The notes under the pieces are model-generated. The model had not been told where the DNA came from and made no database searches. It saw only the letters and a list, made by a program, of their open reading frames with translations. Positions 41,210-47,090 of a stretch of 64,000 bases of DNA are shown here, piece after piece. This stretch comes from Rebecca billardiae RCC1528. Its lineage: Eukaryota > Protista > Haptophyta. The translations under genes were made by a program, and so were the position numbers. Where the stretch lies: assembly GCA_965240325.2 (NCBI GenBank), contig OZ251225.1, forward strand, positions 1,426,001 to 1,490,000, written 5' to 3'. The stretch's first letter is position 1. Every line of letters begins with the position of its first letter.

Positions 41210-43592
41210 TCAGCCGGGGCTGCTCGCGGCGAGGCCGCCTGGCAAGCTCTCGAGCTTGGCGGTGCCCTCGAGCCAGACGCAGGGGTCGCGCTCTTTCTTC
41301 TTGACGGACGGGTACATGGTCGCCTCGAAGCGGCACTCCTTCTGACAGTACGCCACTCGGATGCCGAACAACCACATCACCAGCTGGTGGAAGTCTGATG
41401 CGTCGCGCGTGGACGCGAAGCCGCCAAAGATGGCCGACGCCTCCTCGAGCGAGACCTGCACGATGTGCGCGTGGCTCACGTTCGCCGCTAGCCGCGCGAC
41501 CTGCGCGTCCGAGCTGCCCCGCGGCACCTCCACCACGAGCGAGGTCTCGCCCGCGCGCGCCTGCGGCGGCGACGCGCCGGCCGGCGCGCCCGCGGCGGCG
41601 CCTCGCGCGGCGCGCAGGATGGCGCGCGAGTTGGACACCTGCGGCGCCTGCCGCAACTCGTCGCCGTACAGGTGGCCCTCAAAGCCGGTGGCTTGGAACA
41701 CCTTGCCCACGTGCGTGCTCGAGATATGCGTCGGCTGCTCGTACCAGTGGCTCGAGTCGAAGATGTGGTCGAACGGGCATACGAACGGCAGCTGCGTCGC
41801 GTGGTGCCCGCCCGGGATCATGCAAGCCTCCAGCCTGTAGAAGTAACGGTCGCAGTAGCACCAGAAGCGCGGCAGGATGAGCGTGCGGTTGAGCGCGACC
41901 GCAAGCGCGATCGCGTGCTGCAGCTTCGCACGGACGCGCAGCTGCCAGTCCACGTGCTGCCACGCGCGCTGGTCGTAGTCCGCGCGGTCGAAGGGCACCG
42001 TGTGCGGCAGCGCGAGGTCGTCCGTGACGAGCAGGAAGCGGCGGGTGTAGAGCAGCTTGGACGGCTCGCCGCCCGCGCCCGGTGGCGGCGGGAGCGCGGC
42101 GGCCGACGAGCTGGCGTGGCGCGTGAGGAAGGGCAGCTTCCACATGCCGAAGTCCTTCATGCGCTGCAGCTTGCCGTACGCGTACGAGGCCGAGTCGCCC
42201 CACGTGAACGTGACGTGCACCGCGGTCGGCCACACGCCCGTCGAGAGGAAGCGCTGCTGCACGAAGAACGAGTGGCCGTTTGCAAAGTAGATGGTCGGGA
42301 GCACGCCGACCACGTACCGCTCGAGCTTGCCCGGCATGCACACCATGTACACCTGCTTCGAGCCGGGCGTGTGCCCCTGCGCCGCCGAGAGCGGCACGCC
42401 GTAGCGCCCGCTCTGGAAGGCGGCGGCGCACATGCTGCGCCTCACCTTGTCAGACTCGGCGTTGCGCGCGCCGTCGTGCCACACGGCCGAGCCGAGCGGC
42501 CGGCCGTCGATCATCTCGTTGAGCAGGTTCTGGTCGTTGTAGCCCTCGCAGCGCGCGTGCTTGCCGCGCACCTCCTCCGGGCAGCGGTAGTACTGCACGA
42601 GCCGGTCCTGCGGCGCGCAGTGCGCGCGCGCGCGAGCGCGGCGGCACGCGTGAGATGGCGCCGCCATCGAGGCTGCGCGCGGTGCGGCGCTCTGCGCCGC
42701 GGCCCCGCGGCCCCGCGCGCGGCGCGAGCCGCCGACGTGCGCGCACCTCCCACTCCTTCACGAAGGTGAGCGAGCGGTTGTTGGCGCGGAAGAACATCAT
42801 GCCCGTGTTCTTCTGCACCGGCGTGTACCAGCACCCCGAGTTGCCGTCGCTCTCGTCGTCCGTCGAGTCGATGCAGTCCGTGGAGATGAGGAGGTCCGCC
42901 TTTGAGAAGTCATGGTACGGCGGCTCGCGCCCGTACACCAGCGGGCGCGGGTCGCGGAACCACGCGGTGTCCGTGTCCGAGATGAGCACGTCGCGCCCGC
43001 CGCGCAGCAGCGACTGGATGAAGAGCGTCTTGAGCACGCCGAGCCCGGCGAAGCCCTTGTCCGAGCCGCGCACGTTGAGCATGCCGGCGTTCTGCAGCCC
43101 GGAGAGGGCGTCGCTCGACGACGCCTCCGCGCCGCCGCGGTGCACGGCGTGCACGGGCACGCCCCACCGCTCGCACACGGTGACCATGGTATCGTCCATC
43201 GCGCCGAGCATGTGCGGCAGCTCGAGCGCGCGGATGTGCAGCACCCAGTTCAGCGCAAAGTCGAGGACGCCCTTGGTGGCAAACGTGACGATGATGAAGG
43301 ACGGATCCTCGACCGCGCCAGCGGCGCCGGAGTGCGCTGGTTCGGCCGTCGACGCCTGAGGGGTGGTCGCCGGTAGTGGTGCCCGCCGCCGGTGCATCGG
43401 GGCCTGCACGCCGGGCAGCTTCGAGGCAGGCTGCACCTCAGCCGATGCTGGTGTGGCGGCGCGCGCGGGCTCAGCCGGGCGCGGGCACGGGTCCTGCACG
43501 GCGCTCGTGTACTTGACGTATCGAAAGTTGACAAGGAGCGAGGCGACAAGCAGCAACGCCACGAGCCATGCGACGCTGCGAAGCCCGGCCAT
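41210..43592 (-). CDS. Nucleotide-diphospho-sugar transferase, GT77 (XEG113/RRA-like arabinosyltransferase); intron 42608-42746
   Basis: Type II anchor, IIVTFA...FALNWV, DVLISDTDTAWFRDP (DxD), DLLISTD, NTGMMF, NDQN, FANGHSFFVQ, AVHVTF, ALAVALNRTLILPRFWCYCDR, LPFVCPFDH. Confidence 0.9.
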
Positions 43593-43782
43593 GCTGCTCC
43601 TCCCCGGCGACCAGGCACGGTGCCGCGCCCTCCCTGGACGACGACCCCGGCAATGGCGGTCGAGCCAGCAGGGCGACGTTTACAAGAGCGCGTCCGGTTC
43701 CTGGGCAGCGCGCGGCGGCGCCGGGCGCACGGGACAACTCCAAAACCTGCCCGGCCCGGGCGGCAGGTCGCGCCCCGTCCCG

Positions 43783-44943
43783 ATGCTCGACATCGCTCAC
43801 TTCCGGGACGACAAGTGGGGTGACGTGCGCACCGTGTGCGAGTCGCAGAGGCGCCGGCGTGCGCGTGTCCAGCTCGTTGACCAGGTCGTTAAGCTCGATC
43901 GCGCTTGGCGCGAGCTATGCCCGGCCGTGGACAAACTCAACAAGTCGCTGGGAGACATCACGCGCCAGTGCAAGCGAGGCACTCGGCCGAGTGAAGCTGA
44001 TCGAGCACGCGCAAAGACGCTCAAAGCCGAGGCCGCGCGCCTGCAGCAAGAGATGCATGGCGCGGAGGTTGCGCTGATCGACGCTCTCCGAGCCGTCCCC
44101 AACCTTGTACACCAGGATGCTCCGCATGGCGAGCCCGGCCCAGAGCATCGCCGGCCGCTGAGCACGCATCAGGCCGTGGGCGTGATCGACGAGAGCGTGC
44201 TGAAGAGCGCGCGCACCCTGAGTGACCACATCGTACACAGGCTCGTGCGCGGCAGCGCAGAAGCCGCGCCATCGGTCGCCGACGACCAGCCATCCCCAGA
44301 GCATGCGCGCCCTGCTGCTGACGACAGCCGGGCCGCCGGCATTCGCGCGCGTGTGCATGGCATGCGCATGCGCGCAGGTGGCGGCGATGCGCGGCTGACA
44401 CCGGGTGGCGCGGTCCACGGATGCCTATGGCTCGCTCCGCACGAGCTGCCGGCGCGCTGTGTCTTCGATGGGCTCCATCAGGGAGCCACCAACGCACCTC
44501 CGAACTCATCAGCAATGCAGCTGTCATCGCCACAGCGCGGCGCGTTGGCTGGCTGCATGGAGCTGTGGGTGCTGAGCGCTGGCGATCCGTACAGCAGCTG
44601 GGATTGCCTGGAGGAGCTGCGGGCGGATGCAGTCGCCGCGCTCGTCGGGCTGGGCATAAGCGTTGGTGTGCGCGACCTGCCTGCAGATGAGCTCGCGCCA
44701 GAAGCAGCGCGCACTTACGACCTGCACGCGCTGAGCTCCGACCAGCTCACAACGCGCGGTCCTGTCCTCGCGCGCTGCACAAACCACGCCGACTACTTGG
44801 CTCGCGCGCACGGCGTGCGCGTCCAGTCCGAGAAGCTGAGGGACCACTGCAAGCGGTACGTGCACACCACGGTGCTCTCATTCGCACCCACGGACACTTT
44901 GCTCACTATGCTGCATCAGAATCAGTCACGGCTTCAAGTATGA
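43783..44943 (+). CDS. Seryl-tRNA synthetase-like protein (cytosolic type), catalytic motifs degenerate
   Basis: N-terminus MLDIAHFRDDKWGDVRTVCESQRRRRARVQLVDQVVKLDRAWR...VPNLVH matches the eukaryotic SerRS arm. The C-terminal SWDCLEEL, AARTYDLHA, LARCTNHADYLAR, KRYVH blocks align with the SerRS catalytic domain, but TxE, motif 2 and motif 3 residues are lost. Confidence 0.85.
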   Translation: MLDIAHFRDDKWGDVRTVCESQRRRRARVQLVDQVVKLDRAWRELCPAVDKLNKSLGDITRQCKRGTRPSEADRARAKTLKAEAARLQQEMHGAEVALIDALRAVPNLVHQDAPHGEPGPEHRRPLSTHQAVGVIDESVLKSARTLSDHIVHRLVRGSAEAAPSVADDQPSPEHARPAADDSRAAGIRARVHGMRMRAGGGDARLTPGGAVHGCLWLAPHELPARCVFDGLHQGATNAPPNSSAMQLSSPQRGALAGCMELWVLSAGDPYSSWDCLEELRADAVAALVGLGISVGVRDLPADELAPEAARTYDLHALSSDQLTTRGPVLARCTNHADYLARAHGVRVQSEKLRDHCKRYVHTTVLSFAPTDTLLTMLHQNQSRLQV

Positions 44944-45548
44944 GTCGGCCGTGACTGACGTGAAGACATATCATCAGAGTCGCGCCGCTTGCCCGCCCGG
45001 CGGCCGCTGCATGTCCATATGCCGCCCATGTATAGCCTGTCCGACTGTGATATTGTACAACCGCCATGCCGATCTTGACTCGTGCCGCCTCGGTCTCGGT
45101 CTCGGAGCGGAGTCGGAGCCATCCGACCGGGGAACACAGTAGTTTGAGTCGTCGGCGACGATCGGAGCGCCGCTGCCTAACTCAGTTAGGGCCTTCAGCC
45201 GAGTCGTCCGGGCCGTTCCAGGTACGTAGGCTTCATCATCAATGACGGCGTACTAGCGCTGTATGTCGGCGTGCACTGCGCGACTGACTGCCTCTGACGG
45301 CTTAGAGTGACTCCGTTACCACCCCACGACTCCCCGGGCGGTTTTCTATCTTATTGGCATATGATACGCGTCGTAGTGCACTCAGACTGCATTATTATTG
45401 CTGATGAAGCTAGTGCCTAGTTAGTTAGCTAGCTAGTAGCTACGTTACTACTTTACGACGCACGTCCGGCACAGCCGGCGGCTCAAGGGTATATTCCTAA
45501 TGTAAAAACAGTTTGTTCTGCTACTTCTTCTAGTTATTAAGATCGAGT

Positions 45549-45644
45549 AAGAATCAGCAGCAGCATCGAACCGTCAGAATTCACTGATATGCCCTGAAGA
45601 ATCAGCAGCAGCATCGAACCGTCAGAATTCACTGATATGCCCTG
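45549..45644. repeat. Perfect 48-bp tandem duplication
   Basis: aagaatcagcagcagcatcgaaccgtcagaattcactgatatgccctg x2. Confidence 0.95.
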
Positions 45645-46162
45645 ATTATGAGCGCGCGGATTTAATTTGATTAGCAGTCGCGCGATGACCCGGCCTGATG
45701 AGATGAGCTGCGCGCCGGCTGCCACTGTAATATACTGCCGGTAACGGTCGGTCGGTAGCTATATATTGTTGATTACGTTGTGAGTGCTGATTATCATGAT
45801 GCGCGATCCTACGGCGCGGAGTATATATGTACGCCTACGGAGTACGGCGGTTATTTCTAAATAGAATATATACGCACTTTATTGTCGATCTGACTTGGCT
45901 GAAGACTTCAAGGGGCTGCGTAGTCACGTTGCCAACGGTCGGCTGCCAGGGGCCGCGTCCGGGCGTACCCGTGGCGTAGTGAGCTGCGCGCACGTGCTGC
46001 CGGGCAGTCTAATGAATCACTTCCAGAGCACGTCGTGATAGAGACTGCGCATCGGACCGCGACGTGCTTCAAGACCACGCCGATTGCGTGCGCGTTGGAG
46101 GCGTTGTTCCCTGGCAGAAATCCTGTGTGAGTGCCACTGTGTGCGCAAGATGACGGCCCGCC

Positions 46163-47090
46163 TTAGGGCTGCTGCTTGTTCGCTTCGCGCTTCGTGCGCC
46201 CTTTCTCCCACGCCTCCTCGAGCTTCTTTTTCGTGGTGTCGTCGGCATCGCGATACATCTCCGACAGCAGCTGCGCGGTTGATTTGCCTTCGTTGTGCTT
46301 AGCTTGCTCTGCCTTGCGCGCCTCCGCCTTTTTCTTGGAGTCGTCCACCGAGCCCCACTCCGCATCTGGCACCTTCTTCGCCAGCTTGATGAGGATGCGA
46401 TCGCTGCGGGGCAGGCGGGGCACACGCCAAGGCCGGTCGGGTTGTGCTCACGCGCGGCGCGGGGCTCTGTGTCGTGCGCAGCACGCTCTCTCACCTCTTG
46501 ACGTTGCAGCTGCTCTTGTCGGGGTCGATCTCGTCGAAGAGCGGCCGCACGAGAAGGACGCGGTCCTTCTCGCCGGTCTGGTTCACACGGAGGCTGAGGG
46601 CGTTCGATTCAAACTCGCATGCGATGTTGCCCTCGGGCAGCTTGTCCACGCCCTCCATAGAGATGTACAGCCTGTGGGGGCACGCGCGCGCGCGCGTGGA
46701 GCGAGCACGTGAAGTGCCAGCGCAGGCGACTTCACCGAGGCGGGCGCAGGCGCTTACTTTACGAATTTGCCGGTCTGTTTGCGCGCGGGCGTGGGAAACG
46801 CGCGCGAGTTGGAGCACGCCGCTGTCAGCACGCGTGGGCGCGCGCAGCGGAGGCGCGAGCGCGTTCGTGCAGCGTGCACGCGGAGTTACCTGATCCCAAG
46901 CATAGCTTGTGATTCGGTTGTCGCCGGCCACAGGCTGGTTGCGGGACGGTTTTGCGGCGATGTCCTCGGAGAGAGCAGCCCGGTGCTCATCCTCGAGGGC
47001 GAGCAGCTCCTTTCGGAGCACTCGTCGCGCTCGCTCCGTTCTGGCCTGCGCCAGGAGCTCCCTGCATTGAGCCAAGTCATCCGACGCCAT
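46163..47090 (-). CDS. CACYBP: Calcyclin-binding protein / Siah-interacting protein (N-terminal helices + CS + SGS); exons 47090-46890, 46774-46758, 46671-46495, 46403-46163
   Basis: The spliced product reads ...ITSYAWDQ|TGKFVK|LYISMEGV...CEFESNALSL...LFDEIDPDKSSCNVK|SDRILIKLAKK...W...LLSEMYRDADDTTKKKLEEAWEKGR. Confidence 0.87.

Follow-up and report, generated by a model that had tools for sequence, protein, structure and literature searches.

In the catalysis of seryl-tRNA synthetase (SerRS), motif 2 (FRxE...RVHQFEK) and the motif 3 Arg are used for ATP, and the TxE loop and a Glu-x-x-Ser element for serine and Mg2+. The amino acid:[carrier protein] ligases of bacteria originate from an atypical, methanogen-type SerRS, have no tRNA-binding domain and keep an active adenylation site. 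To our knowledge, the animal, mitochondrial protein SLIMP is the only well-studied SerRS in which the tRNA-binding arm was kept and the active site was lost. Here we describe a gene of the haptophyte Rebecca billardiae RCC1528, located at 43783-44943 of the forward strand in a 64,000-nucleotide stretch (positions 1,426,001 to 1,490,000 of contig OZ251225.1, assembly GCA_965240325.2; the window hereafter). Its product, called pseudo-SerRS, and the orthologues of this product (group 1) are the second, independently evolved case, after SLIMP, of a SerRS paralog with the arm kept and the active site ablated. In the literature searched we found no paper that describes a dead algal SerRS of the cytosolic type.

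SLIMP derives from the mitochondrial SerRS2 (PMC10570016). Pseudo-SerRS resembles it in that the catalytic pocket is lost but the coiled-coil tRNA arm is kept along with the class II fold, and in being selected across many species; the conserved arm contacts next to an ablated pocket reproduce the pattern reported for SLIMP (PMC10570016). However, SLIMP is mitochondrial and pairs with an arm-less SerRS2alpha, whereas pseudo-SerRS is of the cytosolic type and its closest canonical relatives keep the arm. All group 1 proteins start at the conserved MLD of the SerRS domain with no apparent presequence, and part of the motif 1 region of pseudo-SerRS is deleted, which are further differences from SLIMP. 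The descent is different as well, cytosolic SerRS outrank the mitochondrial ones both by sequence and by fold, and a tree that contained no SLIMP sequence agrees with this. The amino acid:[carrier protein] ligases are, like pseudo-SerRS, SerRS-derived paralogs that do not charge tRNA (PMC9437257), but they represent the opposite pattern, without the arm and with the active site kept. With the canonical cytosolic SerRS (Arabidopsis 6GIR/8P1Z, human 3VBB/4RQE) pseudo-SerRS shares the N-terminal domain, including the ESQRRR helix, DxxWR and NxVH..P, as well as the order of the secondary structure elements, with a fold match of Z ~25 over ~315 residues. It differs from them in having no TxE, motif 2 Arg/Glu, RVHQFEK, Glu-x-x-Ser or motif 3 Arg, in being ~60-90 amino acids shorter and in lacking the C-terminal extension.

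The gene and its segments are given below, together with the evidence for each. P0002, to which the identities refer, is an orthologue of 367 amino acids from an MMETSP transcriptome, marked complete and 55% identical over 98% of the length.

43783..44943, + strand: complete coding sequence of a predicted catalytically dead cytosolic-type SerRS paralog, group 1 pseudo-SerRS (open reading frame, orthologues P0002-P0008, SerRS fold in the AlphaFold2 model)
43783..44130, + strand: N-terminal coiled-coil tRNA-binding arm, residues 1-116, ending in NLVHQDxPHG (Pfam Seryl_tRNA_N; predicted local distance difference test score, pLDDT, >90; 66% identity to P0002)
44131..44388, + strand: shortened, fast-evolving remnant of the motif 1/first core segment, residues 117-202 (27% identity to P0002, in-frame indels)
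44389..44562, + strand: former TxE loop and motif 2, residues 203-260 (hhalign columns, column table, regular expressions, low pLDDT)
44563..44940, + strand: conserved C-terminal half of the class II beta-sheet with degenerate motif 3, residues 261-386 (72% identity to P0002 over 261-372, pLDDT ~90-96)

Translation of the region gave an uninterrupted open reading frame (ORF) of 386 amino acids plus the stop codon, within a stop-to-stop frame of 526 codons, and an identical protein is encoded on Logan contig L001. Since the local DNA is ~70% G+C, long open frames are common in it, and therefore the openness of the ORF is supportive, moderate evidence and not decisive; when the local 2.5 kb was shuffled, the longest open frame had a mean of 216 codons, and 386 codons were reached in 0 of 300 shuffles. 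The G+C content at the three codon positions (GC1, GC2, GC3) followed a coding-like pattern, with GC2 the lowest, in all four segments of the ORF, the poorly conserved middle included. When five canonical SerRS were used as tblastn queries, the matches were confined to the N- and C-terminal blocks of the annotated frame; neither motif 2 nor motif 3 was present in the other frames of 42500-47000, and no canonical SerRS was found elsewhere in the window. The possibility of a mis-modelled gene with introns could be ruled out, as P0002 is collinear over 98% of the length, the coding periodicity is continuous and the motifs are absent from the other frames. Thus the intact, intron-less ORF of 386 amino acids proposed by an earlier examination of the letters (the sequence-only reading) was confirmed, and no spliced or corrected model restoring motif 2/3 emerged. 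Just downstream of the gene, at 45000-46500, the G+C content falls to 0.54-0.60 as compared with ~0.70 for the window. When tRNA genes near the locus were looked for, none were found in the window.

The arm was recognized by Pfam Seryl_tRNA_N (PF02403), which matched residues 1-109 over the full model (108 positions) with an E value of 1.3e-13, above the gathering score. In contrast, tRNA-synt_2b gave no match even at E <1, while canonical SerRS controls matched it at E values of 1e-35 to 1e-47. The same combination, Seryl_tRNA_N present and tRNA-synt_2b absent, was found in every member of group 1, and tRNA-synt_2b was likewise absent from every member of group 2, a second degenerate clade described below. 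The best sequence match in the PDB was the Arabidopsis cytosolic SerRS (HMMER), in which residues 1-115 and 211-382 are collinear with 1-118 and 246-412, respectively. When the family was compared with 16 canonical cytosolic SerRS at the profile-profile level, the match had a probability of 99.9% and an E value of 1.3e-34 over 346 columns, therefore the scaffold is homologous throughout. The conserved blocks SW..LE, EAAR.YDL, ARCTNH.DY.AR and KRYVH were aligned in these comparisons, and they are the C-terminal blocks that the sequence-only reading had considered collinear with SerRS. Its assignment to the cytosolic eukaryotic type also held, the best PDB matches by sequence and fold being the Arabidopsis, human and Candida cytosolic SerRS, in agreement with the placement in the tree.

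In order to follow the catalytic residues, the columns of group 1, group 2 and the 16 verified canonical cytosolic SerRS were compared, using the numbering of P0012. In the canonical set 88 columns have a conservation of at least 93%, and group 1 keeps 5 of the 8 such columns in the arm and 9 of the 80 in the core. None of T-S-E-Q, the motif 2 Arg and Glu, the FRVHQFEK hairpin, N335, K341, E345, Glu-x-x-Ser, T394, the motif 3 Arg and E407 is kept in group 1. The positions T238, S239, E240, R269, E271, R284-K290, E345, E356, S359, T394 and R400 are all replaced, and the replacements themselves are unconserved. Searches by regular expressions gave the same picture: TxE, FRxE, RVHQFEK and the motif 3 Arg were absent from every member, while the canonical controls had all four. 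In the window protein the canonical Glu-x-x-Ser became Val-x-x-Arg and the motif 3 Arg became Thr or Ala. Within residues 203-260 the strand ELPxR is kept, and variable loops of low complexity stand in the place of TxE, FRxE and the RVHQFEK hairpin. The motif 1 region (117-202) is ~30 amino acids shorter than the canonical one and has only the motif 1 Pro of the canonical invariants. The earlier proposal that the arm was kept and the active site lost was thus borne out by the Pfam matches, the regular expressions and the column comparison.

The AlphaFold2 model based on a 41-sequence alignment had a pLDDT of 84.2 and a predicted template modelling score of 0.83. The arm was built of two long helices at 30-64 and 71-104, and low confidence was restricted to three loops: 159-177 (pLDDT <50, disordered), 202-212 and 235-253. 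In structure searches (Foldseek, VIA-align) all the top matches were SerRS; the Arabidopsis structure 8p1z was matched with a Z of 25.7 over 316 residues, within the model range 1-386, and the human, Candida and Naegleria cytosolic enzymes outranked the mitochondrial ones. The possibility that the fold had been imposed by the canonical SerRS in the alignment was ruled out, since a control model from 29 degenerate sequences only (pLDDT 80.9) had the same secondary structure and a Z of 25.2 to 8p1z, the two models matching over 307-316 residues. Thus the overall three-dimensional fold of SerRS is predicted with confidence to be retained.

The members of group 1 were collected by an exhaustive hidden Markov model search of 1.84 billion cluster representatives, using a two-sequence profile of the window protein and P0002. 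P0002 scored 745 bits, six further representatives of 329-443 amino acids (P0003-P0008) scored 134-197 bits, and everything else remained at or below 94 bits. The group spans at least eight lineages, with lengths of 329-443 amino acids. The only named host is the pavlovophyte Diacronema lutheri, a haptophyte whose GC content is 73% and whose genes often have a single exon (PMC8379373); here the protein (KAG8467382.1) is annotated as hypothetical, and the search for orthologues in other haptophytes suggested by the sequence-only reading was successful in this case. Further members come from JGI and Logan assemblies, where the JGI label is 'seryl-tRNA synthetase'. Word-index searches with the family profile and the group 2 core yielded no named members beyond those already known. 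One member, P0007 (L009:5218-6549), carries a Gly/Ala/Ser/Glu-rich repeat insert of ~33 amino acids at the tip of the coiled-coil arm.

In the alignment of nine group 1 sequences 47 columns are invariant, and they lie in the arm (D3, F7, R8, W12, G13, D14, R16, E20-R26, D39, W42, R43, N107, V109, H110, Q111, P114, G116) and in the C-terminal sheet (S272, W273, R310, Y312, N334, H335, D337, R341, R353, D354, T362, L365, F367), while residues 117-260 are variable with in-frame indels. The window protein fits the signature of the group, namely a WGD(P)R loop, ESQRRRR, NxVHQDxP(H)G, SSW, (A)R.Y, NHxD[YF]xxR and RD...[YF]VHT..LSF without any catalytic motif. Its identity to P0002 is 66% in the arm, 27% in 117-202, 45% in 203-260 and 72% in 261-372. 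Since there is no P0002 DNA on record, a leave-one-out test of the invariant columns was used in place of a dN/dS value for the window lineage: 47 of the 49 columns invariant in the other seven lineages are kept in the window protein, and the other members behave in the same way. Such mosaic conservation, together with the leave-one-out invariants, does not fit neutral decay. Where DNA was available for orthologue pairs, dN/dS (omega) was calculated by the Nei-Gojobori method. It was 0.34 for L002 versus L003 (18.5 synonymous and 17.5 non-synonymous differences, Fisher p 0.003) and 0.31 for L003 versus L015 (p 1e-19); the deeper pairs gave 0.45-0.55 with saturated dS. Group 1 pseudo-SerRS is a real protein, orthologous across lineages and under purifying selection, and it is not a pseudogene. 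The sequence-only reading had regarded it as a conserved pseudo-enzyme rather than a decayed pseudogene, and had named the absence of transcription and of orthologues, with a dN/dS near 1, as the outcome that would speak for decay; the at least eight lineages, the omega of ~0.3 (0.31-0.34), the transcript-derived orthologue, the retained invariants and the confident predicted fold all point the other way.

The structure of human SerRS with tRNASec has demonstrated that R9, R44, R47, D51, N54, N58 and S61 of the arm, in helix 1, contact the long variable arm, with support from mutations (PMC4666401). Over the helix 1 stretch the human numbering is the same as that of P0012. In group 1 these contacts are kept as follows: R9 in 9 of 9 sequences, R44 in 9 of 9, D51 (D/E) in 8, N54 in 5, N58 in 8 and S61 (S/T) in 7; R47 is variable in the canonical enzymes too, and the retention is as good as among canonical sequences. 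Adjoining the tRNA-binding face, group 1 also has invariant changes of its own (human numbering): Trp in place of G13, Arg in place of E17, Arg at position 27 and Gln in place of E115. There, an invariant Trp-Gly-Asp-Pro-Arg (WGDPR) loop, W12-G13-D14 and R16 in the window protein, replaces the canonical Gly-Gly-x-Pro-Glu, a change suggestive of a new surface for a partner. The m3C methyltransferase METTL6 touches human SerRS at two places, of which the K12/G13 loop is one (PMC11479938), and the coincidence of the positions is taken as a lead only.

On this basis we consider it fairly probable that pseudo-SerRS is a dead but selectively maintained paralog of cytosolic-type SerRS, which likely binds type II tRNAs without charging them and acts as an adaptor or regulator. 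According to the model, a duplicated cytosolic-type SerRS would have lost the residues binding serine, ATP and Mg2+ and part of the motif 1 region, while the class II scaffold and the full-length N-terminal coiled-coil arm would have been retained after the catalytic loss. Given the conservation of the residues with which the arm of human SerRS reads the long variable arm, the protein would most likely bind tRNASer and possibly tRNASec, and it may work as a tRNA adaptor or regulator either alone or paired with another protein. The roles put forward by the sequence-only reading, a heterodimer partner of true SerRS, an adaptor for tRNAs with a long variable arm or a cofactor of m3C32 methylases, are candidate roles at this stage.

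The origin of the protein was addressed by a maximum likelihood tree (LG+C20, 48 rows, rooted on bacterial-like sequences). Group 1 was supported at 100/99, group 2 (13 rows) at 99/97 and the two together at 100/100 on a stem of 1.74. This pseudo clade is nested (96/86) together with some of the cytosolic-type SerRS, P0044 among them, and the placement indicates that pseudo-SerRS arose by duplication of a cytosolic-type SerRS. Since SLIMP comes from mitochondrial SerRS2 (PMC10570016), the origin is independent of SLIMP, as the sequence-only reading had anticipated. P0044, one of the closest canonical relatives of the clade, is a canonical SerRS of 644 amino acids with a C-terminal Dpy-30 motif (PF05186, E 4e-5). 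Long-branch attraction between groups 1 and 2 is possible. The two groups do, however, have derived states in common, for example Arg for Ser and Ala for Val within the ELVSCSN block, and Trp for Phe behind the former motif 2 strand.

Group 2 consists of P0009-P0018, P0030, P0055, P0057, P0061, P0108, P0198 and P0199, with lengths of 412-569 amino acids, and the following loci belong to it.

L010:6001-7299: group 2 gene
L011:4054-5352: group 2 gene
L012:3045-4322: group 2 gene
L013:449-1726: group 2 gene

Its members are known only from assemblies of marine and other metagenomes (ENA, JGI and Logan), on eukaryote-like contigs of ~60-62% GC, and they outnumber group 1 in clusters at 50% identity. 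Cluster look-ups, the contexts and the protein atlas gave nothing finer than 'eukaryote' for the taxon, and no description of these proteins was found in the literature searched. As a sister clade, group 2 resembles group 1 in having lost the same catalytic motifs, with Seryl_tRNA_N as the only domain and ELPxRY retained. It differs in being longer, in keeping more of the motif 1 region and the canonical GG loop, and in having lost the D51 and N58 arm contacts. Two further SerRS-like proteins branch inside the canonical cytosolic group: P0029 (457 amino acids), on a long branch, has no TxE/FRxE by regular expressions but still scores with tRNA-synt_2b, and P0067 (403 amino acids) has only a partial core match. 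These may be further independent degenerations or fragments of gene calls.

The pseudo-SerRS gene lies head-to-head with a glycosyltransferase family gene, GT77.

41210..43592, - strand: divergent neighbour gene with a signal anchor and a GT77 Nucleotid_trans domain (Pfam PF03407, E 3.8e-20; tblastn with the Diacronema protein)
43593..43782, no strand: 190-bp divergent intergenic spacer between the pseudo-SerRS and GT77 genes, a putative bidirectional promoter (head-to-head arrangement across lineages)

The neighbour consists of the GT77 Nucleotid_trans part with the signal anchor (42744-43592) and a C-terminal domain of ~460 amino acids (41231-42610), which matched no Pfam family and is ~58-59% identical across lineages. 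In the window the gene is split over two frames, while it is a single ORF of 788-841 amino acids in Diacronema (L005-L007) and in L015. Both parts are covered by tblastn with the 788-amino-acid single-ORF protein of Diacronema, and the split therefore points to a frameshift or a short intron near 42610-42744. The pair is head-to-head in 7 of the 8 group 1 lineages, with 12-228 bp between the start codons (the window, L002, L003/4, Diacronema L005-7, L008/L014, L015/16 and L017); only in L009 is the GT77 neighbour missing. Unlike in group 1, neither of the two contexts read for group 2 has a GT77 gene beside the group 2 gene. Between lineages the identity of the GT77 protein is 56-85% as compared with 32-60% for pseudo-SerRS, and the outer neighbours vary from lineage to lineage. 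An ALMT gene was considered as a further conserved neighbour and rejected: it is found downstream, tail-to-tail, in L002 and Diacronema only and is absent from the window. The pairing is proof of the orthology of the pseudo-SerRS genes and gives a hint of co-transcription; the two genes would probably be transcribed together from a bidirectional promoter. Further upstream in the same frame, the ATG at 43591(+) shares 2 nt with the start codon of GT77 on the opposite strand and would add an Arg-rich extension of 64 amino acids to pseudo-SerRS. This upstream ATG occurs in the window only, and since the extension is conserved in no orthologue and shows no coding GC periodicity, it is probably not used.

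Several other explanations have to be compared with an adaptor or regulator of type II tRNAs. A recently dead pseudogene, or a chance frame in GC-rich DNA, would be in line with the overlapping ORFs present and with the frequency of open frames of 200-300 codons at 70% GC. It would also account for a GC3 of 0.75 in the ORF versus 0.91-0.95 in the adjoining gene, which could reflect low expression or somewhat relaxed constraint, and for the fact that the evidence of transcription is the mRNA of a relative (P0002, MMETSP) and not of the window copy. However, full-length in-frame orthologues in at least eight lineages with an omega of ~0.3, the conserved invariant residues, the same architecture in the mRNA of the relative and the outcome of the shuffles have largely refuted this explanation, and we give it practically no credence. 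The GC3 and the source of the transcript weigh against the adaptor/regulator model as well, and so do the following points. The omega of ~0.3 is fairly relaxed, and both AlphaFold2 models were built on shallow alignments. The motif 1/dimer-interface region is the least conserved part of the protein, which leaves room for more than one oligomeric state. Gly57 of the window copy corresponds to human Asn58, and the other 8 members have Asn there; the conserved synteny with GT77 could be passive, a short spacer being a small target for rearrangements; and both the binding of tRNA and the absence of all activity are deduced from sequence and predicted structure.

More serious is the possibility that pseudo-SerRS is an obligate subunit like SLIMP, forming a heterodimer with the canonical cytosolic SerRS and providing the arm in trans, or titrating or regulating that enzyme. 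SerRS binds tRNA across the dimer, the arm being contributed by one subunit and the active site by its partner (PMC4666401, PMC11479938), SLIMP itself is a precedent for an arm-keeping, site-dead SerRS that works as a subunit (PMC10570016), and the class II core fold is predicted to be retained. Still, we regard it as unlikely, because the nearest canonical relatives (P0044, P0045, P0056, P0196, P0197), unlike SerRS2alpha, keep their own Seryl_tRNA_N arm, so that complementation in trans is not needed, and the region of motif 1 and the dimer interface is the most degenerate and is shortened. A scaffold that no longer acts on tRNA, serving protein-protein interaction or a role tied to the co-regulated GT77 protein, seems less probable again. 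The GT77 pairing persists in 7 of 8 lineages whereas the genes further out change, the invariant substitutions G13W, E17R and E115Q (human numbering) create a new surface, and non-translational roles of SerRS are known (PMC10817482); yet the residues contacting the variable arm are as conserved as in the canonical enzymes, the GT77 protein, with its N-terminal signal anchor and in view of what is known of GT77 enzymes, is likely a lumenal type II membrane enzyme, so that a direct physical partnership with a cytosolic protein is not obvious, and L009 lacks the pairing. We consider it very improbable that the protein is still an enzyme with a remodelled pocket, catalyzing a different reaction or sensing a small molecule like HisZ. 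The floor of the former active site does contain invariants (R310, Y312, N334, H335 and the Arg at the former Mg-binding Ser), but the known residues binding ATP, Mg2+ and serine are all lost and the motif 2 hairpin was converted into unconserved, low-confidence loops of variable length.

The adaptor/regulator model can be extended, although this version is speculative and we hold it with clear reserve: groups 1 and 2 together may form an old, widespread cytosolic pseudo-SerRS clade of marine protists, in which the WGDPR loop would pass tRNAs to a modification enzyme, to an enzyme of the selenocysteine pathway or to a regulatory partner. If true, substrate selection would be uncoupled from aminoacylation in these two groups. 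The naming of such proteins as 'seryl-tRNA synthetase' by JGI would overcount the functional aminoacyl-tRNA synthetase genes. Group 1 is a natural experiment on the synthetase scaffold after the loss of catalysis, and it offers a handle on the biology of tRNAs with a long variable arm, that is tRNASer, tRNASec and m3C32 targeting, in selenoprotein-rich algae. Pseudo-SerRS represents the cytosolic-type case of the evolutionary route taken by SLIMP, in several algal lineages including the cultivable Diacronema lutheri, for which a genome and RNA-seq are available.

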